A stretch of 64,000 nucleotides of DNA from Salpingoeca rosetta (taxonomy: Eukaryota > Protista > Choanoflagellata), in assembly GCA_033442325.1 (NCBI GenBank), contig JAWQFM010000016.1:1035679-1099678 (forward strand), in the 5' to 3' direction. Positions 2,897-45,139 of the stretch are shown here, in pieces. Positions within the stretch are counted from its first letter, which is position 1, and every line of letters starts with the position of its first letter. The notes under the pieces are model-generated. The model was given only the letters and a program-made list of their open reading frames with translations, ran no database searches and was not told where the DNA came from. The position numbers were made by a program, and so were the translations under genes.

Positions 2897-10245
<7,349 letters not shown>

Positions 10246-10495
10246 CCAAGCACGCACTCCACCGAGCACCACGACCGCAACAACACAAACAAACGACACA
10301 AGTCCGCTTTGCGGCGCTGCTGTCGCTGATGTCAGCAGAAAAAAAAATTGTGGTGTGTGGGCCTGTTGTTTGGGTTCTCGCCTTTTTTGTGGGTGGGCGT
10401 GGAAGAAGGCATTCTTGTGTTGCTTGCAAGCAAGCAGAAGGGGAACAACAAACAACCAACCAGCCAGCCTCCCAATACAAGCAACAAGCAAAACC

Positions 10496-16360
<5,865 letters not shown>

Positions 16361-19181: not shown

Positions 19182-20063
19182 CTCGCGCCCACCTGTGCGC
19201 GGCGTTGAGGATGGCCTGGAAGACGGGGAACTTCTCACCGCTGCAGGTGGACACCTTGCAGCCAACACAGGGCGATCCCTGCACAAGACAACAGCAAGAC
19301 AACAGCAAGACAACAGCAGCAAGATGGCGGCAAGGCGATGAGCATTGCACAACAGCAACGCAGCAAACACACACACACACACAGGGAAGCATGTGACTTT
19401 GCTCAAGCACCAAGAACTAAGGCCTTGCGCCACACCCAGGAAAAATCAAACGTACGCTCGAGCAGTGGCTCCAGCTGGAGAAGCTTGGCGTGATGATGTC
19501 GAGCGTCTTGCTGGCCTTGCTGATAAAGTCCACGATGGTGTCCACCGAGTGATCTGGGCTGAAGAACGGGGTGATGGTGAGATCCGCAGACGACAGCTCC
19601 AGCGGCTTGAACTGGGCGTGGTACGTCTTGGTCTGGTGGTCATACGACGGATCAGAGGGCGGAGACGGTGGTGCAGTGCCTGCACGCGCATCATTGAAAA
19701 AAATAATACAAGAGACAAGGGTTAGATGCTGCAGTGCACGGCAACACCGTGACTTGCGGAGAACAGTCCTACAACAAGCAAGCAATCTGTGTTTTGTTTG
19801 TGTGTGTGGTTGTGTGTGGTTGTGTGTGTGGTTGTGTGTGGTCTGTTCTCTTCTGACATACCATTGCAGGCGCAGCCTGGGGGCTGATGGCACGTGTTTG
19901 AGTCCGAAATGCACGAGTCCCCACACGCCTTTGAGCCATCGCTGCAGTACTTGCAGCAGGACGGATCAGCAGCAGCCGCAGCCATCACCGTCACCGCAGC
20001 AGCAGCGGCCACGATGACAGCCAGGACCACGGCCACCTTCTTTCCTCCAACAACAAGCATCAT
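16930..20063 (-). CDS. Secreted phospholipase D-superfamily phosphodiesterase with two HKD motifs and an N-terminal Cys-rich module, multi-exon
   Basis: Signal peptide (KKVAVVLAVIVAAAAAVTVMAAAAA); CCKYCSDGSKACGDSCISDSNTCHQPPGCAC; TPFFSPDHS; HSKFMMRDGNAASISSVNWS; second motif split by an intron, YNH/QKFWIADGTRVSFSTGNWS; NRDF. Confidence 0.85.
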
Positions 20064-32944: not shown

Positions 32945-33012
<68 letters not shown>

Positions 33013-33252
33013 ATGTGTTTTTGACAGTTGTGGAGTGAGTCTTGGTGTCTCCATCACACCGTCCCCCATGTTCGTGTCACATCACAACACACTTTTATGG
33101 GCGCTTGCAGGATGCGGTGGTGTTGGCCTCGTGCGCCAACTACTTTTCCTTCTCAACAGCACACCTGCACGTAAGTGCAGCTTATGCACTGAGTGATGGA
33201 TGGGTGGATACGGGAAGGGGAAGACGAGAGAGGAGCGAGGGGCGAAAAGCTT

Positions 33253-33344
<92 letters not shown>

Positions 33345-33674
33345 AACACACACACAAACATGCATGTGTGCTCACGTCGCTTCACACCCCCCCCACCAAA
33401 CACCAACTCCATGGGTAGGACACGTGTCATCAGCGGATCCAGGCGACGTTGTCAACGTCCAATGCCGTGCCGGTGCTTAAAGCTGCTGCTCTTGTGCACA
33501 ACGATGATGCCAAAGAACAAGCCATGGCCATCATTGTCAAGAACCTGCCCCAACTCTCACAACAGAGCGACTTTGACACTCTTGACAAGCAGCTCTTGCT
33601 CGATGTCCTCAAGGTGTGTGCATGCAGCACGGGTTGCGTGCGCATGTGTTTATGTGTGTGCGCGCGCGACTGTG

Positions 33675-33707
<33 letters not shown>

Positions 33708-33725
33708 ACACACACACACACACAG

Positions 33726-33756
<31 letters not shown>

Positions 33757-33976
33757 TACTTGCGTCCTTGTACACGTCCCATGCGTGTTGTACCATGTAC
33801 CATGCGCATTGCGCTGTTCGCACTTTCTTGATACCCCTCACACCCGTCCATCCGTCAACCCTCCTTTCCCTCTCTTCCTTTCCCCTCCCTCCAACCATCA
33901 TCAGCGTGTCGCCGAAGCACCGCGTGTGCCAGCATGCACCACAGCCAGCACAACCGCCCATGAAACAACCGTGTAA
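28102..33976 (+). CDS. LZTR1: Leucine zipper-like transcriptional regulator 1 ortholog (Kelch repeats + two BTB-BACK), multi-exon
   Basis: [39 protein letters not shown]; [30 protein letters not shown]; RLNDMW; PPPCCNMP; RRFGHSMV; PSGRCFHSA; BTB ([17 protein letters not shown]) and BACK segments. These closely match recalled animal LZTR1 motifs. Confidence 0.88.
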
Positions 33977-34178
33977 TGCCGATTTCCGTTAAAAGATATA
34001 CACGAATCTTCAGTATTGCAATCATCCGCGCACAATCTTGCACAAAGCGCACACACACTGCACCAAAGAGCTCCACCTCCACACACGCCCAGCCACCCAG
34101 CCAGCGTGTACTCCATTTACACCACCCCACACCACCAAACCATCCCCCCCTCCCACACACACACAAAGAACGGACGCG

Positions 34179-36321
34179 ATGGCGACGCTTGCCGAGCATT
34201 TGGCGGAGCGCCGGGAGCCCGAGGCGCACGAGCTGGAGGCGAAGAACTTCCCCGAGCTGAAGAACGACCTGATTCTGCGCGCAGCACGACGCGAAGATGT
34301 GGAGCGCGTCCCCGTGTGGGTGATGCGCCAGGCAGGGAGGTACCTGCCAGAGTACAACGCCATTGGCGAAGGCCTGGACTTCTTTGACAAGTGCCGCACC
34401 CCAGCGCTCGCGTGCGCCATCACCTTGCAGCCGCTGGTGCGCTTCCCCATTGACGCCGCCATCATCTTCTCCGACATCCTCGTCATCCTGCAGGCGCTCG
34501 GCATGCACTGCGACATGGTCAAGGGCAAGGGCCCCACGTTCCCGCAGCCCATCACCTGCCGCGAGGACATTGACGCCCTCAACGCCGACGTGGACGTGCA
34601 TGAGTCCCTCGGGTACGTGTTCAAGGCCATCACGCTCACGCGCCACCGCCTGGGAGGCCACGTGCCGCTGATTGGCTTTGCCGGCGCGCCCTGGACGCTC
34701 TTCGCCTACGCCATCGAAGGCAGCGGCTCCAAGACCTTCTCCAAGGCCAAGAGCTGGCTGTACAAGGACCCGGAGGCGTCACACCGCCTCCTCTCCATGA
34801 TCACAGACGTCACCGTGCGCTACCTTGTGGCGCAGGTGCGCGCCGGTGCGCAGCTCCTGCAGGTGTTCGACTCGTGGGCAGGCAGCCTGTCCCCACGCCA
34901 CTTCCGCGAGTTTGCCGCCCCGTATCTGGTGCGCATTGCCTCCGCCGTCAAGGCCGAGCTGGGCACCGACGCCGTGCCGATGATCTGCTTTGCCAAGGGC
35001 GCGCACTGGGCCTTCAGCCTGCTCGAGTCCTCGGACTACGACGTGCTGTCGCTGGACTGGACCATGGATCCGCAGGAGGCGCAGCGCGCAACCAAGTCCC
35101 GCATGGCCTTCCAAGGCAACATGGACCCCTGCGCCATGTACGGCAGCGACGACACCATCCGCGAGGAGGTGTGCCGCGTCATGTCGCTGTTTGGCACGCG
35201 CGGGCACATTGCCAACATGGGCCACGGCATGTCCCCCGACATGGAGCCGCGCGCAGTGGCGGCCTTTGTCGACGCCGTGCACAACTTCTCCTCCCGCCAG
35301 CGCGTGTACACCATCGGCACGCGCGGGTCCGTGCTGGCGCTGTGGCAGGCGCACTACGTGCTGGATCGCCTGGTCAAGAAGTACCCGACGCACCGCTTCC
35401 GCATCAAGGTGGTTGACACGGCCGGCGACAAGGACCTCACCACCGCCCTGGACAAGTTTGGCACGACGGGCGTGTTCACGGACGCGCTGGAGCGTGCGCT
35501 CGTGTCTGGCGAGGTGGACTGTGTCGTGCACTCGCTCAAGGATGTGCCGTCCACCCTGCACCCTTCGACGCGCCTCGCCGCCATCAGCGAACGCCACGAC
35601 CCACGCGACTGCGTCGTGTTCAACCCGCGCCACAACGGCCGCTACAGCTCCATCGCCGACCTCCCACCGGGCAGCGTGCTGGGCACCAGCTCTGCGCGCC
35701 GCCGTGCGTTCCTCGCGCGTGCATACCCTTCCCTCACCTTTAAGCACGTGCGCGGGAACGTGAAGACGCGCCTGCGCAAGCTCGATGACCCGGCCAACGG
35801 ATACGACGCCCTCGTGCTCGCCTCTGCTGGCCTGGAGCGGCTGAACATGGAGGCACGGGTTGGCGAGAAGCTGAGCGTGGACGTGGTGCCGCACGCTGTT
35901 GGCCAGGCAGCGCTGGGCGTGCAGGTGCGATGCTCAGCCAAGCCGGGGCCCCATGGTGGCGAGGGCGGCGATGATGATGATGATGACGGTGACAAAGATG
36001 CTGCGGTGCTGGCGGAGATGCTGCATGCGAGTGTGCAGTGCAACGAGACGGCGCTTGTGTGCAGCGCCGAGCGTGGCTTCCTGCGCTCGCTCGGGGGCGG
36101 GTGCTCTCTGCCCATCGCAGTGCGCTCGCAGCGCGACGCCGACACGGGCCGCATCGTGCTGTGCGGCAACGTGTGCAGCGTGGACGGCAAGACGCTCGCC
36201 TCGCGCACGTGCGACGCCGTTGTGACGACAGAGGCGGAGGCCGCTGCGCTTGGCGAGAAGGTGGCTGCCGACCTCAAGGCGGACGGTGGCGAGGCCATTC
36301 TCATCGAGCTCCGGGCACAGC

Positions 36322-36358
<37 letters not shown>

Positions 36359-36392
36359 TGACGTGGACGGGCGCACCGTCGTCTCGCTCTGA
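34179..36392 (+). CDS. UROD-HMBS: Intronless fusion of uroporphyrinogen decarboxylase (UROD/HemE) and hydroxymethylbilane synthase (HMBS/HemC), 737 aa
   Basis: UROD (~34179-35300): NFPELKNDLILRAA, PVWVMRQAGRYLPEY, AAIIFSDIL, LIGFAGAPWTL, QVFDSWAG, QGNMDP, NMGHG. HMBS (~35301-36310): IGTRGSVLALWQA, GVFTDALE, VHSLKDVP, GTSSARR, RGNVKTRLRKLD, AVGQAALG, ERGFLRSLGGGCSLPI (cofactor Cys). One continuous ORF. Confidence 0.95.
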
Positions 36393-36744
36393 TGCCCTGT
36401 GTGTGTGTGTGTGTTTTCGTTGTGACTTGCCGTGTGTTGGGTTGGTGTTGTTGTGTGTCATGACCCTTTGGTTCTTTGTCGCAGTTTGCGATTGCGTGCT
36501 TGCTTGCCCCTGATGGTGTCAATGAACAGTTTAATCGTCGCAATGACATTGGCAAGAAGGCATTGTTGAGCTCAGCAAGACTGGTGCCGTGATGGCGCCA
36601 TCCCAAGCACAGGACACATGTGAAGACAAGGGGAAGACAAGGGGAAGACAAGGGGACGGACCGACAGACAGATAGCCAGACGAGCAGGAAGACAGACCTA
36701 TTTACACGCACACGTGCAGACAGACAGACAGGCAGACAGACAGG

Positions 36745-36775
<31 letters not shown>

Positions 36776-36937
36776 GCACACACACACACACAGACAGACA
36801 GACAGACACCCACACCCACACGCACACACACACAGACAGACACCCGCACCCACACCCCCCACACACACACACACAGACAGACACCCGCACCCACACCCCA
36901 CACACACATATACCCACACAGACACAGATGCAGTTGC

Positions 36938-39103
36938 CTAGGAGAGGAGGTCGACAATTTGGTTTGCGATGGATGCGCTTGTGACGATGCAGTCATTCAC
37001 GCCGACTCCAAAGCCAAACGCCTTACCGCCCACAAACAGCCACGGCAGGTGTGCCTGCACGCACGCCTCCATGTCGGCGCGAGCTGCAGCGTACAGGTGG
37101 TCAAACTGCGGGATGGCACGCACCCACCGCGTGAGACGCGAGGCAGACGGGGTGACGGCGACACCAAGGTGCTGCTGCACGCACTGCCACGCCTCATCCA
37201 GCAGCACCTGCTCGCTTGATGTCTCCACAAAGGTCTGGTGGTTGTGGCCCTCCCCGCCGAGCATGGCCGTCAGCACCACGTGCTCTGCACCTGCCAATTC
37301 GGGAAAGACGCACGAGTCGTACACCACGCCCAGGAGGTGGCCACGCGCCTGTGTGCGCGGCATGAGGAACCCAAAGCCAGGCTCAACGCCTTCCTTCACG
37401 ACGGCCTTGAAGGAGGACCGCAGGAACACAAACGTGACCACGGCAATGGACAGGCTACGTACGCGGGCGAGCTTGTTGGCGCAGGCCATGGCGCGGCGGT
37501 GCGCCGTCTCCGTGAGCGAGAGGTGCGGCAGACTGCTTGCAAGCAACTGGTGCAGCTCTGCGGGCGGCAGCGTGGAGATGACGCAATCCACGTCAACCAG
37601 CATGGGCGCCCCGTCCTCATCCAACAGCGCAACCCCGGTTCCACCGCTGCTGGCCCCGTCACCAACGCGACCACCACTCTCATCGCCATCGTCACGGCCA
37701 TCATCGCCATCATCGCCAGCACCATGGTGATGGCCGTCGTTGTCGCTGTCGGTGTCAGCGCTGCGTGCCATGCGAGCCACGGCTGCGCCCATGTGCATGT
37801 GCACGCCAGCCTCGACGACGTGTTCCCACAGGGCGGACGTGAGCGTGGTCAGGCCGCCCTTGAGCGAGGCCACGCGCTCCTTTGCGGCGCGCTGCAGCCA
37901 GCGCTCCACGCGGTCCGGCACCTGCGGGGCGGGCGGCATGATTGGGGTCTCATATGCGGCGGAGAGCTTGAGGAAGCGGTCGAGGATGGCACCCAGCACG
38001 ACGGAGCCGTACGCTTGCTCCAGCTGCCACATACTGGGGAAGGCGTAGCGCAGCAGGAGCTTGTTGGCCTCGCCGCTGAAGATGCCGTGCACGAGGGCGG
38101 TGAGGAAGCGGGTGGCGAGGTGGCGGGAAAAGTGCTTGGTGAAGAAGGCTTCGCACGTGTCGTAGCCCACGCCCTCGTCCCTGTGGAACAGGGCCTGCGT
38201 CAGGTCCCGCAGCACAGCGGGGACGAGGCTGTGGCGATACGCAAAGCCGAGGATCTGCGAGACGGAGGTGGGCAGCTCCTCAAGGGCGGCGGTGTCTTCG
38301 TCAAACACGAACCTACGGCCGCGTGTTGCACGGTTGGCCCACTCCAGCTGCGGGCCGAGACCTAGCTCGTCGATGAGCTGCAGCGCAAAGCGGGCAGAGG
38401 CGGTGGAGGTGCGCAGGGAGCGGGGCCCCGTCTCGATGCGCACGGGCGTGGACGGCTGGACAGCCTGCACAGTTTGGATGTTTCCACCCACGACATCATC
38501 CTTCTCGAACACGTGCACATCAAACTCTGGCCGCTTCTTCTTGATGTAGTATGCAGCGGCGAGTCCACTGATGCCTGCGCCCAGCACGGCGATGCGCGGG
38601 CCTTCTTCTTCTTTGTCATCATCATCATCATCACCATCATCACCATCATCGTCGCCTTTCTGCGAAGATGATGATGCTGCTGCGTCTCCTCCTCTCTTCC
38701 CTTTCTCCTGACCCTCTGTGTCTTCGTCGTCTTCAGCCTCGTCGCCACTGGCGACGCTGGCGTATGTCTTCTTCTTGTTGTGCTTGTTCTGTTGTGAGCG
38801 CTTCTTGCCCTTGCGCTTGCTGCTGCGGTGGTGGTGCTTGTGATGGATGTGGCGCCTGAAGGCTGCTGCGGTCTTGACGCGCTGCTGGTAGTCGCGGGCT
38901 TTCCTCTTTCTCTGTTGCACCCACAGGTACAAGAGCGCCAGCGTCGTGGCCGTGCCTCCGGCCGCAGCCAGTGCCAGCACACGCCCAGCTGACGTGGGCC
39001 CCTTCCTCTGCGCTGCTCCCGTCGCTGGCATCGCCGTCGTCGTTGTGTTGGGCGAGGCGATGCAAGAAAATGGAATAGCGACAGCACAAAGTGCAGTAAA
39101 CAT
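36938..39103 (-). CDS. PPOX: Intronless protoporphyrinogen oxidase (HemY/PPOX type) with N-terminal signal-anchor extension
   Basis: FAD-binding IAVLGAGISGLAAAY..VFEK..GG; ETGPRSLR; HGIFSG; LKGGLTTL; GFGFLMP; LGVVYDSCVFP; LTAMLGG; AIPQF; GVGVNDCI. Start at 39103 or 39031. Confidence 0.92.
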   Translation of the reverse strand: MFTALCAVAIPFSCIASPNTTTTAMPATGAAQRKGPTSAGRVLALAAAGGTATTLALLYLWVQQRKRKARDYQQRVKTAAAFRRHIHHKHHHRSSKRKGKKRSQQNKHNKKKTYASVASGDEAEDDEDTEGQEKGKRGGDAAASSSSQKGDDDGDDGDDDDDDKEEEGPRIAVLGAGISGLAAAYYIKKKRPEFDVHVFEKDDVVGGNIQTVQAVQPSTPVRIETGPRSLRTSTASARFALQLIDELGLGPQLEWANRATRGRRFVFDEDTAALEELPTSVSQILGFAYRHSLVPAVLRDLTQALFHRDEGVGYDTCEAFFTKHFSRHLATRFLTALVHGIFSGEANKLLLRYAFPSMWQLEQAYGSVVLGAILDRFLKLSAAYETPIMPPAPQVPDRVERWLQRAAKERVASLKGGLTTLTSALWEHVVEAGVHMHMGAAVARMARSADTDSDNDGHHHGAGDDGDDGRDDGDESGGRVGDGASSGGTGVALLDEDGAPMLVDVDCVISTLPPAELHQLLASSLPHLSLTETAHRRAMACANKLARVRSLSIAVVTFVFLRSSFKAVVKEGVEPGFGFLMPRTQARGHLLGVVYDSCVFPELAGAEHVVLTAMLGGEGHNHQTFVETSSEQVLLDEAWQCVQQHLGVAVTPSASRLTRWVRAIPQFDHLYAAARADMEACVQAHLPWLFVGGKAFGFGVGVNDCIVTSASIANQIVDLLS

Positions 39104-39848
39104 CGGTTGCGCGAAGCGAGAGAGAGAGAGCTTCGAATCGTTCGTTCAATCTTGCGTGGTGTTGCTCGCACACATGTTGCTTGCTTTTTGCTTGCTTGCG
39201 TAGGTCCCACACTCTCTTCCGCTCTGCGTATGCTGCTTGTCCTCCTCGCCACCCGCCTGCCTGCCAGCTCAGCAGCAGCAGCAGCATTGATTGATTGATT
39301 GCCGAGAGCGCTTTGCTTTGGCTTTGTTTCGAAGGAGGGTTTTTGTGTGTTGGGTGTGCGTGGGTTGTGTGGCGTCGTCACAGCCAGCCAGCAGGGGTCG
39401 TGCAGAGACCTTGTATCCTGACGTAGCTCTGGAGGAGGAGCGACCAATCTGTGCTGTGTGCCAACCGCCTGGCCCATTTCGGTTGGTGCTGTTGTCGGTG
39501 GTGGTGGTGCTTTTGAAAACAGACATAAGAGTACACTGCCGAGAGTGCTGCCGTGAGTGATAGAGCTACCCATCAGGCTGATTTGGCTTCTTTCTCATTG
39601 TGCGCTCCATTTTGCATCAGGTCCATTCTTTCGATCCACTCCCTCCCTCCCCCCCCACCCTTTCTCATACACTCTCTCGCGTGCGCGTGTCAAGCTTTGT
39701 TTGCCTTTCTCCTTTTCATTCCTCAACAAATCATTCCCTCTGCCTTTTCTTTTTCTCTCACCCGCCCCCCCTTCCCCTGTCCTCTCACATCATTCCTTTT
39801 TGTCTCGTCTCCTCTCTCATCCCTGTGACTTTCCCCAAGCCAGTGAGA
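39104..39848. promoter_or_regulatory. Putative bidirectional promoter shared by PPOX and ALAS
   Basis: About 750-bp head-to-head intergenic region with TGACGT (39419) and CCAAT (39444); function inferred only. Confidence 0.45.
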
Positions 39849-41093
39849 ATGCACGGGATCTCGAAACACTTTCGCCCCCGCGTGGTTGCGGCGTGGATGC
39901 GCCATCGAGCGACCGCGACGGCAACGGCGGTGGCGCCGGCCAAGCGACGCCTGTCCCTTGCTGCCACCTCCCTCTCATCATCAAAGGACGACAACGGCCA
40001 CGCCCATGGCCACGCCCATGGCCACATGCACGGCCACATGCACGGCCACATGCACGATGAGCCGCAGTGCTCGTTTGTTGGCCCGGATGGCAAGCCCGTG
40101 TGCGCGACCAACACGGTGGAGACGCTGCGGCGCTCGTGCCCTGCTGGCACGACGTCGGTGCCGCTGCCGGAGCACGAGCCCATGGAGACGATCGAGAGCA
40201 GGCATCCGCCGGTGATGGACGTGGACCCTGCCACGGTGAGCCAGGGCCTGCGCCTCAACAACGCGGGCCAGTGCCCGTTCCTGAAGGAGGTAGGCCACCA
40301 GATCAAGGACAAGCCCGTGGTGCAAGCAGCACTGCAGTCGCGCCACCCAGAGTCTGGCAAGCTGTTCAAGGCCGTGATTGACGACGCCCTGCTCACCGTG
40401 CTCAAGCAGCTGCGCCAGCAGAAGCGGTACCGCGAGTTTCTCTACTTCAAGCGCTCCGTCGGCCAGCACCCGGAGGTGGTGCACACCCTGCACCCGGGCC
40501 ACAACCAGTTTCTCCCGCCCGGCAGCGACACCATTCTCCCGCAAGGCGTCACTTCGCAGCCGCACGCCAACGCGTCCACCGTCGCTGGCGTGTCATCGTC
40601 GTCATCAGCGGGACACGCGGCGGCCGTGGACGAGCATGAGCACCGGTCAGTGAAGCAGGACCGCGTGGTGGTCAACTGGTGCTCCAACGACTACCTGAAC
40701 ATGGCGCACCACCCATCCGTGATTGAGGCCATGCAGCGGGCGCTGGTCGAGCAAGGCGCCGGTGCTGGCGGTACGCGCAACATCTCCGGGTCAAACGTCG
40801 TGCACGTGGAGCTTGAGAATGAGCTGGCATCGCTCTGCGACACTGAGGCTGCCCTCATCTTCAACTCATGCTACACCGCAAACCTTGGTGCGTGCATGTG
40901 CGTGTGTGTGTGTGTGTGTTTGGGGTGTGTGTGTGTTTGTGCATGTGTGTGTGTGTGTGTGTGTGTTTGGTGCGCTCTGGATCCTTGCATGCATGCTGCC
41001 GCTGTCACACGGCGTGGTGTTGCACATCCACTCGATCGCACGGCCCATCCCCCACTTAACGTCCCGAGAAATTCCACTCACCTCGTCTTTCCC

Positions 41094-41186
<93 letters not shown>

Positions 41187-41807
41187 GCATGGTGCAGGGG
41201 TGATGGAGGCGCTGTCATCCACGCTCAAGGGGGAGACGGTGATCATATCGGACCAGGAGAACCACGCGTCCCTCGTGCAGGGCATCCGAAACACCCGCCT
41301 GCCCAAGAAGATTTTCCGCCACAACGACCTTGATCATCTCGAACAGATTCTCAAGGACACGCCCCGCGACACAAACAAGGTGTGCGCACGTGTGTGTATG
41401 TGTGTATGTGTGTGTATGTGTGTATGTGTGTGTGTGCGTGTGCGCGCGTGCGTGTGGGAGGAGGATGGTTACGTGCACAAATTTGAGCAACGGGTTGCTG
41501 CCACGAATAAGTTACAATACACATACACACACATGCACACATGCACACACACATGCACACACACACTCACCACCTACCTCGTCCTTTCTCCATTCCCTTG
41601 ACAAATGTATTCGCCGTAGGTTGTGGTGTTTGAGAGCGTGTACTCCATGTCCGGGACAATGGCACCCGTGTCGGCCATCCTTGACCTGTGCGAGGAGTAC
41701 GGTGCACTCTCTGTCATCGATGAGGTGCATGCTGTTGGTCTCTATGGCGAGCAGGGCGCAGGCATTCTGGACATGATTGGCCAGCGCGGCAGGGCAGACA
41801 TCGTCAC

Positions 41808-41846
<39 letters not shown>

Positions 41847-42572
41847 CATGGTACGCTGCTGTGTATTTGGCGCATGTGACGCATTCGGTGAACGTTCTCC
41901 GTCCCATTCCCTGCACCATTCTTTGTACCGACACTCACTCACCTCTTCCTTCCTCGTGTTTCTTCTCTTCCTTCCTCTTAACACGCCCCACCCCCCTTCT
42001 CTCTCTCTCTCTCTCCACCAATCCACGGCCACCACGCAGGCACGCTCGGCAAGGCGTTTGGCGTGAGCGGCGGGTTTGTTGCGAGCAAGCGGCACGTGAT
42101 TGACGTGATCCGCTCCACAGCGCCGTCGTTCATCTTCACCACGTCCATGTCCCCAGTGGTGGCGGCGGGCGCGCTGGCGTCGGTGCGACACGTGCGGCAG
42201 CAGGGCGAGGACCGCGCTGTGATGATGGTCACATGCAGCCGCATCAAGCAGCGCATGATTGACGCCCACCTCCCGCTCATGTCCACGCAGACGCACATCA
42301 TGCCGCTGCTTGTGGGTGAGGGCAGCCTGTGCAAGCGCCTCTCTGACGAGTTGCTTGCGCTCGGTATCTACGTGCAGCCCATCAACTACCCGTCTGTGCC
42401 CAAGGGCGAGGAGCTGTTGCGGTTCACGGCGGGCCCAAAGCACACGGAGAAGCACATTGCCCACCTCATCTCATGCCTGTCAGACGTGTTTTCCCGCCAC
42501 GGCCTGCTCACCACGCAGACGACCAACCCAAAGCTGGACGCCGTGGCCGCCAGCGCCTCCGCCACACAATGA
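39849..42572 (+). CDS. ALAS: 5-aminolevulinate synthase, mitochondrial; exons 39849-40887, 41198-41379, 41620-41809, 42040-42572
   Basis: Arg/Ala/Ser-rich presequence; CP motifs; RYREF; [10 protein letters not shown]; [12 protein letters not shown]; FNSCYTANL; [13 protein letters not shown]; FESVYSMSG; [10 protein letters not shown]; GTLGKAFG (PLP Lys); SFIFTTS; [18 protein letters not shown]. Confidence 0.95.
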
Positions 42573-42954
42573 ACGCACACTTTTGGAGTGGCTGAGCGAG
42601 CCTCGGGTTTCTTGTGAGGGGTGTTTGATGATGTCGAGAGACGTATGATCGTGCATGTGTTTGCCTGTCTTTTGATTGCACGTTGTCTTGCTGCGACACT
42701 GCTCGCGCTGGTGTCATTTTTTCTTTCGTCCCGTGTGCGTTGATGCTCGTGCACCCCTGCCCTTTCTTGCCTCGTGTGTTGCATTTCCCTTTTGACTGTC
42801 GTCTTGCTTGCCTGCCCTGGTTTAGTAGTTCGCTCGCCCTCCCTCTGTTTTCTTTCGTTTGTCACATCACGTTGCCCTCGCTGTGTGTGAACCACGCAGT
42901 TACACTTTGAGTTTGGGAGAATGAATCGAGACTGACCGAGTTTGATCCACCAAC

Positions 42955-43046
<92 letters not shown>

Positions 43047-43418
43047 GGCTCTCATCGCACGCGTGGTTGTGGTGCTGTGGCTATATGGGGTTGAAAGCGC
43101 GCTGGGAGAAAGCTTAATTGAGCAGGTACACGAGAGAACGCAGAGAGGTGTGCAGCGGGAATGGTGAGGATCGAGGGTTGTCATGGCGAATATGGCGATG
43201 CAAGGCAAAGCAGGGCAAGACAAAAGAAGAGGGACAACACCGTTGAACAGGAAGAAACAACAACGAATGAAGCACTTGGCGAGTGTGCCACACTACAAGT
43301 CGTGTCGCATCATCCCATGACATGCCAGTGTGATTTCCCGCTTCTCCCGTGCTATGGTTGCAACTACAACCAATTGCACTTGCTGGACCAACTGCAATTG
43401 CGGTTGTGGTTGTCGGTG

Positions 43419-45139
43419 TTAGCGGTACAGGTGCTCGGCCTCGATGTTCTTCTGGATCTCAACCTCCCACTTGTCGCCGTTCGCCAGCAGCTTGTCCTTG
43501 TTGTACAGCAGCTCCTGTTGAAGCCGTGACGGCGGTGAGATGAGACGATTGGAATGTGCATGTGTGCGTGTGCGTGTGTGTGTGTGTGCGTGTGCGTGTG
43601 TGTGTGCGCGTGTGTGTGTGCGCGTGTGTGTGCGTGCGTGTGTGTGTGTGTGTGTGTGTTCGTGTGTGTGTGTGCGTGTGTGTGTGTGTTCGTGTGTGTG
43701 TGTGTGTGTGTGTGTGTACCTGGTGGGTTTCGGTCGAGTATTCAAAGTTGGGGCCCTCGACAATGGCGTCCACAGGGCAGGCCTCCTGCATTTGTACACA
43801 ACACAACACCAAGAAAGCAGGCGGCGGTGAGGGGTTGATTGTGCGTGCGCGATTGAACTTTTTTATGTGCATGTGTGTGTATGTCGTGTGTATGTCGTGT
43901 ATGTCGTGTGTGTCGTGTGTATGTCGTGTGGCGCAAGGGGAAGAAGAGGAAAGTTGCAGGAACGGGGGAAGCGTGAATTGCACGGCGCAGCACACACGAG
44001 CGCAAAGCAACACATGCCTGGCAGAATCCGCAGAAGATGCACTTGGTCATGTCAATGTCGTAGCGGGTGGTGCGACGGCTGCCGTCCTCACGAGGCACCG
44101 TCTCGATGGTGATGGCCTGAAGGCAAATTTCAAAGAACCATAAAATTAGTTGTGCGTGTGTGCATATGTGTTGTAAAGAAGCCGATGGGAAGTGGCAAGG
44201 CAGACACGCCAAACACCACGCGGGAAAACGGGTGTACGCACGCACAAAAACGACACACGCACACGTGCACGCAAAGGATGCATGCAGCCACACGCAACAC
44301 AGCATTCCGCGTTTCCTCCAGCACCCACGCACCCACACATGTATCGCATGGCTCACAAGTGCGGACCTGGGCGGGGCAGATGGCTTCGCAGAGCTTGCAG
44401 GCGATGCAGCGCTCCTCGCCAGATGGGTAGCGGCGGAGGGCGTGCTCGCCACGGAAGCGGGGGCTGAGCGGGCCCTTCTCAAAGGGGTAGTAGATTGTGG
44501 CCGGCTTGCGGAAGTAGTACGACAGCGTCATGCCCATGCCGCGGAGCACCTCTGTCAGGAACAGCGTCTTTGACGCAGACTCCATCACGTCCTCAAACGA
44601 CTTTTCCTCTGTCACATTTGGGAAGCCGGGGGCGGGCGGGGGGGGGAGGGGAGGTGTGTGGATTGGATTGTGGTGTGTTTGCGTGTTTGCGTGTGAGTGA
44701 GTAGGGTGTGTGTGTGCATGTGTGTGGGTAGGTAAGAGAGAGAGAGTGTGTGTGTGTTTGCGTGTTTGCGTGTGAGTGAGTGTGTGTGTGAGTGTGTGTG
44801 TGTGTGAGTGTGTGTGTGTGTGTGTGAGTGAGTGAGTGAGTGCGTGTGTGAGTGAGTGAGTGAGTGAGCGAGTGTATGCATACAAATGCATACGTGTTCA
44901 CGTGTGGTTGATGGTGATGGGTGAGCGAATGCGCCAGCACGACACTCGCAGCGTTTGCTCAGTTGCTGCAGCCAACATGGACACGCACGGCAACCACAAA
45001 ACGCAGCCGTACCATATCTGTAGTCCACGTTGTCCACGTATTTCTTCTCAACAGACATGGCTGCCCGCTGTGCCGTGACACCGGCCAGCCGTGGCACAAC
45101 GGCTGTTCGCCTCGTCGCCAGCCGAATCAAACCACTCAT
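43419..45139 (-). CDS. NDUFS8: NADH:ubiquinone oxidoreductase TYKY/23-kDa Fe-S subunit, multi-exon
   Basis: [46 protein letters not shown]; [37 protein letters not shown]; [17 protein letters not shown]; mitochondrial presequence. Confidence 0.97.

Follow-up and report, generated by a model that had tools for sequence, protein, structure and literature searches.

A 64,000-nucleotide stretch of the genome of the choanoflagellate Salpingoeca rosetta (C16:1035679-1099678, C16 being contig JAWQFM010000016.1; hereafter the window) has been analysed with regard to three genes of heme biosynthesis. The genome comprises 55.4 Mb in 68 contigs. A gene encoding a UROD-HMBS fusion protein (+), the PPOX gene (-) and the ALAS gene (+) were found as immediate neighbours within 8.4 kb of the window (34179-42572), with UROD-HMBS and PPOX in convergent and PPOX and ALAS in divergent orientation. 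Heme synthesis has eight steps, of which four are encoded by these genes: step 1 (ALAS), step 3 (HMBS), step 5 (UROD) and step 7 (PPOX). An earlier note, made from the sequence alone, had described three adjoining genes that converge and diverge in this way with no other gene between them, and both profile matches and RNA have confirmed this arrangement, the coordinates being exact. The cluster of primary-metabolism genes in a unicellular holozoan that the note proposed is also real, and the nearest named relatives of the cluster proteins, among the matches listed, belong to the choanoflagellates Barroeca monosierra, Hartaetosiga and Choanoeca. The designation operon-like had to be abandoned, as the genes alternate between strands (+, -, +) and are transcribed into three separate polyadenylated mRNAs. 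Because both strands are used and each gene has its own 5' end and poly(A) site, the locus is a eukaryotic metabolic gene cluster and not an operon: at least three non-homologous genes of the same pathway are direct neighbours, and neither co-directional genes nor a single polycistronic RNA was found.

Structure and expression of the clustered genes

The open reading frame (ORF) of the UROD-HMBS gene runs without interruption from 34038 to 36392 (+), and its ATG at 34179 agrees with the database model. The UROD part matched PF01208 with 441 bits and TIGR01464 with 416 bits (cutoff 303; profile positions 2-338 of 338), and the HMBS part matched TIGR00212 over its full length with 269 bits (cutoff 164). 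The linker between both parts has only about 8 residues. An alignment with a relative from TARA Oceans displays PVWxMRQAGRYLPEY, IIFSDIL and GHIANxGHG in the UROD part, which we take to be UROD motifs, and HSLKD, GTSSARRR and GGGCSLP in the HMBS part, presumably HMBS motifs, the last of them with the cofactor cysteine. The fusion protein has no N-terminal presequence, and its UROD is 55-66% identical to animal and fungal UROD. The DNA upstream of the gene (33640-33790) is rich in (GT)n/(CA)n repeats.

Expression was analysed with two stranded raw RNA-seq runs (X21 and X22) aligned to positions 35000-40999. Three monocistronic mRNAs were observed, with a similar depth for all three genes (roughly 25-130), and no further transcript was detected in this interval. 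Plus-strand RNA covered UROD-HMBS continuously at a depth of 25-75 up to a 3' end at about 36440, with zero splice joints over 35000-36400, the domain junction included; the fusion is thus made as one mRNA.

The ORF of PPOX (36938-39103, -) matched the HemY-type model TIGR00562 with 190.7 bits (equivalog cutoff 97.85) in two stretches, with an acidic insert between them. As the 5' end of the RNA lies at about 39044, the start codon is that at 39031 (697 aa) and not that at 39103. Minus-strand RNA reached a depth of 30-95, the poly(A) site was located at about 36517 by a poly-T loose end, and molecules begin at 36552-36560. The protein starts with a hydrophobic segment that is followed by a charged low-complexity extension. 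Compared with the bacterial and animal PPOX profiles, the additional N-terminal region has about 145 aa and is first hydrophobic, then basic and then strongly acidic and of low complexity (38500-39031, -); the acidic insert within the catalytic domain is rich in Asp and Gly (37600-37800, -).

The mRNAs of UROD-HMBS and PPOX end about 80 bp apart. On the other side of PPOX, the RNA depth drops to about 4 or less between the transcript starts of PPOX and ALAS, which are separated by about 190-240 bp. This distance fits a compact bidirectional promoter, and the data are consistent with PPOX and ALAS sharing a bidirectional promoter region.

The ALAS model comprises 647 aa in four coding exons (39849-42572, +), and all its introns are of the GT..AG type. 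The exons scored 112.7, 49.3, 75.3 and 161.8 bits with TIGR01821, a rough sum of about 399 bits over separate exons against a cutoff of 338.55, and ALAS was the top family for each of them, above the models of the KBL, BioF and SPT paralogues. In the 5' untranslated region (5' UTR), the three alternative acceptors of the intron were supported in both RNA runs (3+6, 9+18 and 4+12 reads). The window ALAS groups with choanoflagellate ALAS in a tree calculated without animals and fungi. Its Arg-rich, presequence-like N-terminus suggests a mitochondrial targeting of the predicted protein. Two Cys-Pro motifs, SCPAG and QCPFL, are located in the N-terminal region (39849-40300) beside a His-rich run, and QCPFL is kept in the TARA relative. 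These motifs presumably resemble the heme-regulatory motifs of animal ALAS, a likeness that serves as a lead only; together with the His-rich run they may be metal- or heme-sensing elements. (GT)n/(CA)n repeats abound in the three coding introns. A scan of 33000-43500 with Rfam for an iron-responsive element or another known RNA in the ALAS leader yielded only sub-threshold matches on GT/CA repeats.

Table 1. Features of the heme cluster (window positions) and location of the other pathway genes (contig positions)
Feature	Position	Strand	Remarks
UROD-HMBS fusion	34179..36392	+	Intronless coding sequence, 737 aa; Pfam, NCBIfam; equals database model P0001
UROD domain	34260..35285	+	PF01208, residues 75-416 of the ORF starting at 34038
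HMBS domains	35310..36278	+	PF01379, residues 425-632; PF03900, residues 673-747 (ORF from 34038)
Convergent 3'-UTR spacer UROD-HMBS/PPOX	36393..36937		RNA 3' ends at about 36440 (+) and about 36517 (-)
PPOX	36938..39031	-	Intronless coding sequence, 697 aa; TIGR00562; equals model P0136
Putative divergent promoter region PPOX/ALAS	39032..39286		RNA 5' ends at about 39044 (PPOX) and about 39232-39286 (ALAS)
ALAS non-coding first exon (5' UTR)	39232..39480	+	RNA depth 24-68; splice donor 39480/39481
ALAS 5'-UTR intron, GT..AG	39481..39838	+	Alternative acceptors at about 39620, 39839 and 39843
ALAS coding exon 1	39849..40887	+	Presequence-like N-terminus, His-rich run, two Cys-Pro motifs, start of the catalytic core
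ALAS coding exon 2	41198..41379	+	TIGR01821 positions 120-182; tblastn against intronless relative; GT..AG model
ALAS coding exon 3	41620..41809	+	TIGR01821 positions 182-244; GT..AG model
ALAS coding exon 4	42040..42572	+	TIGR01821 positions 253-399; GTLGKAFG (pyridoxal phosphate-lysine motif); to the stop codon
ALAD	C10, 1.530 Mb
CPOX	C11, 0.763 Mb
FECH	C16:1005053-1006695		Same contig, 64.8 kb upstream of UROD-HMBS, 29 kb before the window start
UROS	C6, about 1.054 Mb (L035 = C6:1053137-1056274)	+

Pathway genes in the genome and conservation of the linkage

UROD, HMBS and PPOX are single-copy in the genome, and other matches of the ALAS model were weaker and apparently of the paralogue type. 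All eight pathway genes have been mapped, with the trio in the window, FECH on the same contig and ALAD, UROS and CPOX on other contigs (Table 1). The earlier note had placed these last four genes outside the window, and this was correct; FECH, however, lies 29 kb before its start. The divergent UROS was missed by a whole-genome scan with PF02602 and was recovered with the UROS domains of UROS-UROD fusion proteins. It is made up of at least four short and colinear exons (1095-1313, 1501-1638, 1912-2058 and 2352-2459 of L035), which match positions 16-84 (29 bits, above the cutoff), 100-139, 143-187 and 199-228 of the HEM4 profile. Chance adjacency was evaluated for the seven pathway loci in 55.4 Mb: three of them would come to lie within 8.4 kb with a probability of 2.4e-6, or of 2.2e-8 with FECH also within 65 kb, so that the adjacency exceeds chance. 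Among about 30 long ORFs from the window and from the 40 kb that separate it from FECH, Pfam scans detected neither another heme gene nor one for iron transport. The divergent neighbour of FECH, with a spacer of less than about 840 bp, is an Ofd1/OGFOD1-type 2OG-Fe(II) oxygenase (PF10637, 240 bits; L040:6460-8535, -), an oxygen- and iron-dependent enzyme.

The same gene order and orientation as in the window were found in the TARA Oceans scaffold L033 (6.9 kb), with 77% identity for UROD-HMBS (over 717 aa), 58% for PPOX and 64% for ALAS exon 1. The trio also adjoins, in a rearranged form, in L026, L028, L029, L030, L039 and a contig of GCA_041447075.1. The sequences of this distant lineage, which includes at least three species, came from the Joint Genome Institute (JGI) metagenomes 3300056825 and 3300056827, the NCBI assembly GCA_041447075.1 and the Logan run SRR26424594. 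Its fusion protein is 46-47% identical to that of the window and its cluster proteins 32-55%, and its PPOX (172-182 bits; cutoff 97.85) and ALAS (466-470 bits; cutoff 338.55) score above the curated thresholds. In the distant layout, for example that of L028 (<PPOX UROD-HMBS> <ALAS), PPOX and the fusion are head-to-head and ALAS and the fusion tail-to-tail, and the cluster genes are intron-free and almost abutting. In L026 and L028, FECH and CPOX are located 5-8 kb from the trio, with six of the eight steps lying within 14 kb, and CPOX is also near the trio in L039. FECH and CPOX are encoded on one strand with an overlap of 4-14 nt between their reading frames (L028:1819-1822 and L026:1866-1879), an unusually tight packing for a eukaryote, and L039 carries a two-exon frataxin gene (19234-19653, +) 7.5 kb from the trio.

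Background synteny was evaluated by comparing every ORF of at least 100 aa from five related loci with 114 kb around the cluster, and only FECH, UROD-HMBS, PPOX and ALAS matched. No counterpart of the ELAPOR-like and FG-GAP genes next to the L028 cluster was found near the window cluster; genome-wide, these genes map elsewhere or nowhere. As only heme genes are common to the related loci and this genome, the conserved linkage is heme-specific. The linkage has been kept while order, orientation and surrounding genes have changed, which is predicted by a maintained linkage and not by a slow decay of synteny. An absence of conserved linkage, which the earlier note had named as grounds against its own reading, was therefore not what the comparison gave: linkage is conserved beyond background synteny, both in L033 and in the lineage of L026, L028 and L039.

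The distant lineage is regarded, from its protein sequences, as a holozoan related to choanoflagellates. Its nearest named ALAS proteins, among the matches listed, are those of Hartaetosiga gracilis (51%) and Choanoeca flexa (49%), and the ALAS tree, again calculated without animals and fungi, joins it to choanoflagellates at 100/100. In the tree of the full-length fusion (691 columns), the distant lineage and the choanoflagellates group at 95/90, opposite them is a group of blastocladiomycete and further fusions (99/98), and Thecamonas is placed separately. The contigs of this lineage are extremely compact and nearly intron-free. An MTHFD-like neighbour gene is split by gaps of 58-72 nt. These resemble short introns, which speaks in favour of a cellular eukaryote. 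On account of these gaps, and as viral hallmark genes were not observed, a giant-virus origin of the compact L028-type contigs was set aside as less likely. In L036, an ORF of 220 aa immediately upstream of FECH was considered as a hidden UROS and discarded, since it did not match HEM4.

The cluster is much younger and less widespread than the UROD-HMBS fusion. The fusion was also found as a single chain in Thecamonas trahens, Blastocladiella britannica, Coelomomyces lativittatus and several further lineages, amounting to about 11 of 1.84 billion cluster representatives at 50% identity.

Proposed selection for coordinated expression and its alternatives

The reading that we favour, with a probability of about 0.7, is that of a genuine, expressed and conserved heme cluster, derived from a larger ancestral cluster that has been partly dispersed, in which selection for a coordinated expression keeps the genes linked. 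A common ancestor would have carried ALAS, PPOX, UROD-HMBS, CPOX and FECH together, and dispersal would have followed in S. rosetta, where FECH now lies 64 kb away and CPOX on a different contig. The remaining linkage would be maintained because selection favours a coordinated expression of the pathway: a common promoter region, chromatin state and synchronised expression noise may keep the steps matched, and the fusion would fix a 1:1 ratio of the UROD and HMBS steps. Matched steps would in turn limit the build-up of photoreactive porphyrinogen and porphyrin intermediates. This proposal follows the yeast GAL cluster, for which chromosomal linkage has been shown experimentally to synchronise expression noise and to lower toxic intermediates (PMC6785257).

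Several results weigh against this reading. The X21/X22 depth ratios were 1.4 for UROD-HMBS, 2.1 for PPOX and 0.72 for ALAS (n = 2 samples), so that PPOX and ALAS shifted in opposite directions despite their common promoter region. A k-mer comparison of the regions upstream of UROD-HMBS, PPOX/ALAS, FECH and CPOX with shuffled controls revealed only CA/GT repeats, and no conserved block of non-coding DNA was seen in the TARA relative, whose intergenic DNA does not align, the common 9-10-mers being at background level or of low complexity. Linkage is not essential, since three of the seven loci lie elsewhere. No other heme gene was present within about 10 kb of the fusion in Thecamonas or Blastocladiella (9 kb in B. 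britannica), nor was one found upstream of the fusion in L038, an intron-rich relative with tyrosine-kinase genes at that place. The distant lineage sits on long branches, and its grouping in a tree of UROD only, supported at 95/92 with 28 rows, was not resolved with 36 rows.

Part of these results would be expected if the cluster were a neutral relic, whose genes were linked in an ancestor without a functional reason, or never became separated, and stay linked through inertia, with neither expression nor fitness affected. The linkage is incomplete in S. rosetta (ALAD, UROS and CPOX elsewhere, FECH 64 kb away), other carriers of the fusion have no cluster, the two RNA samples are not parallel and no common cis-motif was found. 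We nevertheless consider this explanation unlikely, because the surroundings have been replaced and the order reshuffled, yet the same pathway genes are still neighbours at 47% protein identity. Inertia would have kept non-heme neighbours equally, and none has been kept.

Cluster formation could also have occurred independently in the Salpingoeca-type and the distant metagenomic lineages. Such a convergent assembly would account for the different layouts (UROD-HMBS> <PPOX ALAS> here and <PPOX UROD-HMBS> <ALAS in L028) and for the upstream side of L038 without a heme gene. It is rendered improbable by the fact that exactly the same three genes adjoin in both lineages, which are sisters in the fusion tree, and that one or two inversions interconvert the layouts. 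If it were true, the case for selection would be stronger still. Chance adjacency, misassembly or the recent transfer of a bacterial hem operon, for which it can be said that Logan DNA contigs break at simple repeats in the region and that no single short-read contig spans it, is hardly credible in view of the P value of 2.4e-6, the same layout in the metagenome scaffold of a separate organism, the agreement of RNA 3' and 5' ends with the assembled layout and, as regards bacterial transfer, the use of both strands, the spliceosomal introns, the poly(A) sites, the eukaryotic best matches and the grouping of ALAS with choanoflagellate ALAS.

Beyond the preferred reading of a partly dispersed cluster under selection, a more far-reaching scenario is put forward tentatively. 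An ancient heme "supercluster" of ALAS, PPOX, UROD-HMBS, CPOX and FECH might have existed in the choanoflagellate, possibly the holozoan-stem, ancestor and have been held together over hundreds of millions of years by selection against phototoxic porphyrin imbalance, and the fusion might date from the ancestor of apusomonads, fungi and animals, with a later re-splitting toward animals and most fungi. If this were true, animals would have had unicellular ancestors in which an essential cofactor pathway was clustered, and the cluster would have been broken up later in animals.

Known gene clusters and other heme fusion proteins

Primary-metabolism clusters in eukaryotes include GAL1-GAL10-GAL7 of yeast, the DAL cluster and the nitrate-assimilation clusters of fungi and algae. 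The heme cluster resembles these in that non-homologous genes of one pathway are neighbours, each with its own mRNA, in a pathway with a harmful intermediate, and in that the orthologues are unlinked in most other eukaryotes. As in GAL1-GAL10, one pair (PPOX/ALAS) appears to have a common divergent promoter. However, the known clusters serve conditional catabolism or assimilation in fungi and algae, whereas the heme cluster of this choanoflagellate belongs to a cofactor pathway that is essential and constitutive; unlike them, it combines cytosolic with mitochondrial steps, contains a fusion of two enzymes and accounts for the non-consecutive steps 1, 3, 5 and 7.

Heme genes are also physically linked in bacteria, as in the hemAXCDBL and hemEHY operons of Bacillus subtilis; the combination of hemE (UROD), hemH (FECH) and hemY (PPOX-type) is reminiscent of PPOX, UROD and FECH lying close together in the L028 lineage. 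An alphaproteobacterial hemC-hemD-IMMP-hemY operon has been described (PMC7641849). Bacterial hem operons are co-directional and polycistronic, whereas the window cluster occupies both strands and has three polyadenylated mRNAs, introns and proteins of eukaryotic type. With regard to the fusion, a HemH-HemQ (CpfC-ChdC) protein of Cutibacterium acnes (PMC13564367) and bacterial HMBS-UROS and UROS-methyltransferase fusions (PMC4921024) likewise put two tetrapyrrole steps in one polypeptide. These join consecutive steps in bacteria, whereas UROD-HMBS is eukaryotic and joins steps 5 and 3 with UROS skipped. The UROD-HMBS fusion was not found described in either of these two papers or elsewhere in the literature searched. 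A full-text literature search and a 2026 review of heme biosynthesis describe neither the cluster nor the fusion, the coverage being incomplete and the result an absence of evidence only; the cluster is not known to have been described before. It thus seems that no gene cluster of the heme pathway had been described in a eukaryote until now. A eukaryotic metabolic cluster with a divergent promoter is known as a kind; what is new is the pathway and the group of organisms concerned, the non-consecutive fusion within the cluster and how deeply the linkage is conserved.

Primary-metabolism clusters are rare in eukaryotes, and nearly all known ones concern conditional nutrient-use pathways of fungi and algae. 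A cluster for an essential cofactor in the closest living relatives of animals is a new test case for eukaryotic gene clustering, in a pathway with well-known light-activated toxic intermediates and in a genetically tractable organism. The fusion and the linkage together provide a physical marker for tracing the reorganisation of heme synthesis before the origin of animals, and the search has pointed to unstudied multi-enzyme heme proteins (UROD-HMBS, CPOX-UROD-HMBS, PPOX-FECH and UROS-UROD).

Among these proteins, the blastocladiomycete fusions P0295 (B. britannica, KAI9219916.1) and P0298 (C. lativittatus, KAJ1507812.1) have an N-terminal region of 250-300 aa with a weak similarity to CPOX (27-29 bits), which, judged from this match, looks like a decayed CPOX domain of a triple fusion. 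A complete CPOX-UROD-HMBS triple fusion of 976 aa (10001-12931, +) is encoded in the 39-kb metagenome contig L031. There it adjoins an FTR1 iron permease gene (8579-9802, -) and lies 7 kb from a PPOX-FECH fusion of 749 aa (374-2623, +) that passes both curated cutoffs, five heme steps thus being carried by two polypeptides. A different heme pairing around the fusion is present in L032, where a full-length ALAD (8413-9393, -; 432 bits) is divergent from UROD-HMBS (10001-11941, +). Proteins of 580-650 aa with UROS at the N-terminus and UROD at the C-terminus were also found (P0084, P0096, P0104, P0115 and P0314), and the reverse-order fusion, HMBS-UROD, occurs in a bacterial metagenome-assembled genome of the Propionibacteriaceae (P0328 and P0439).

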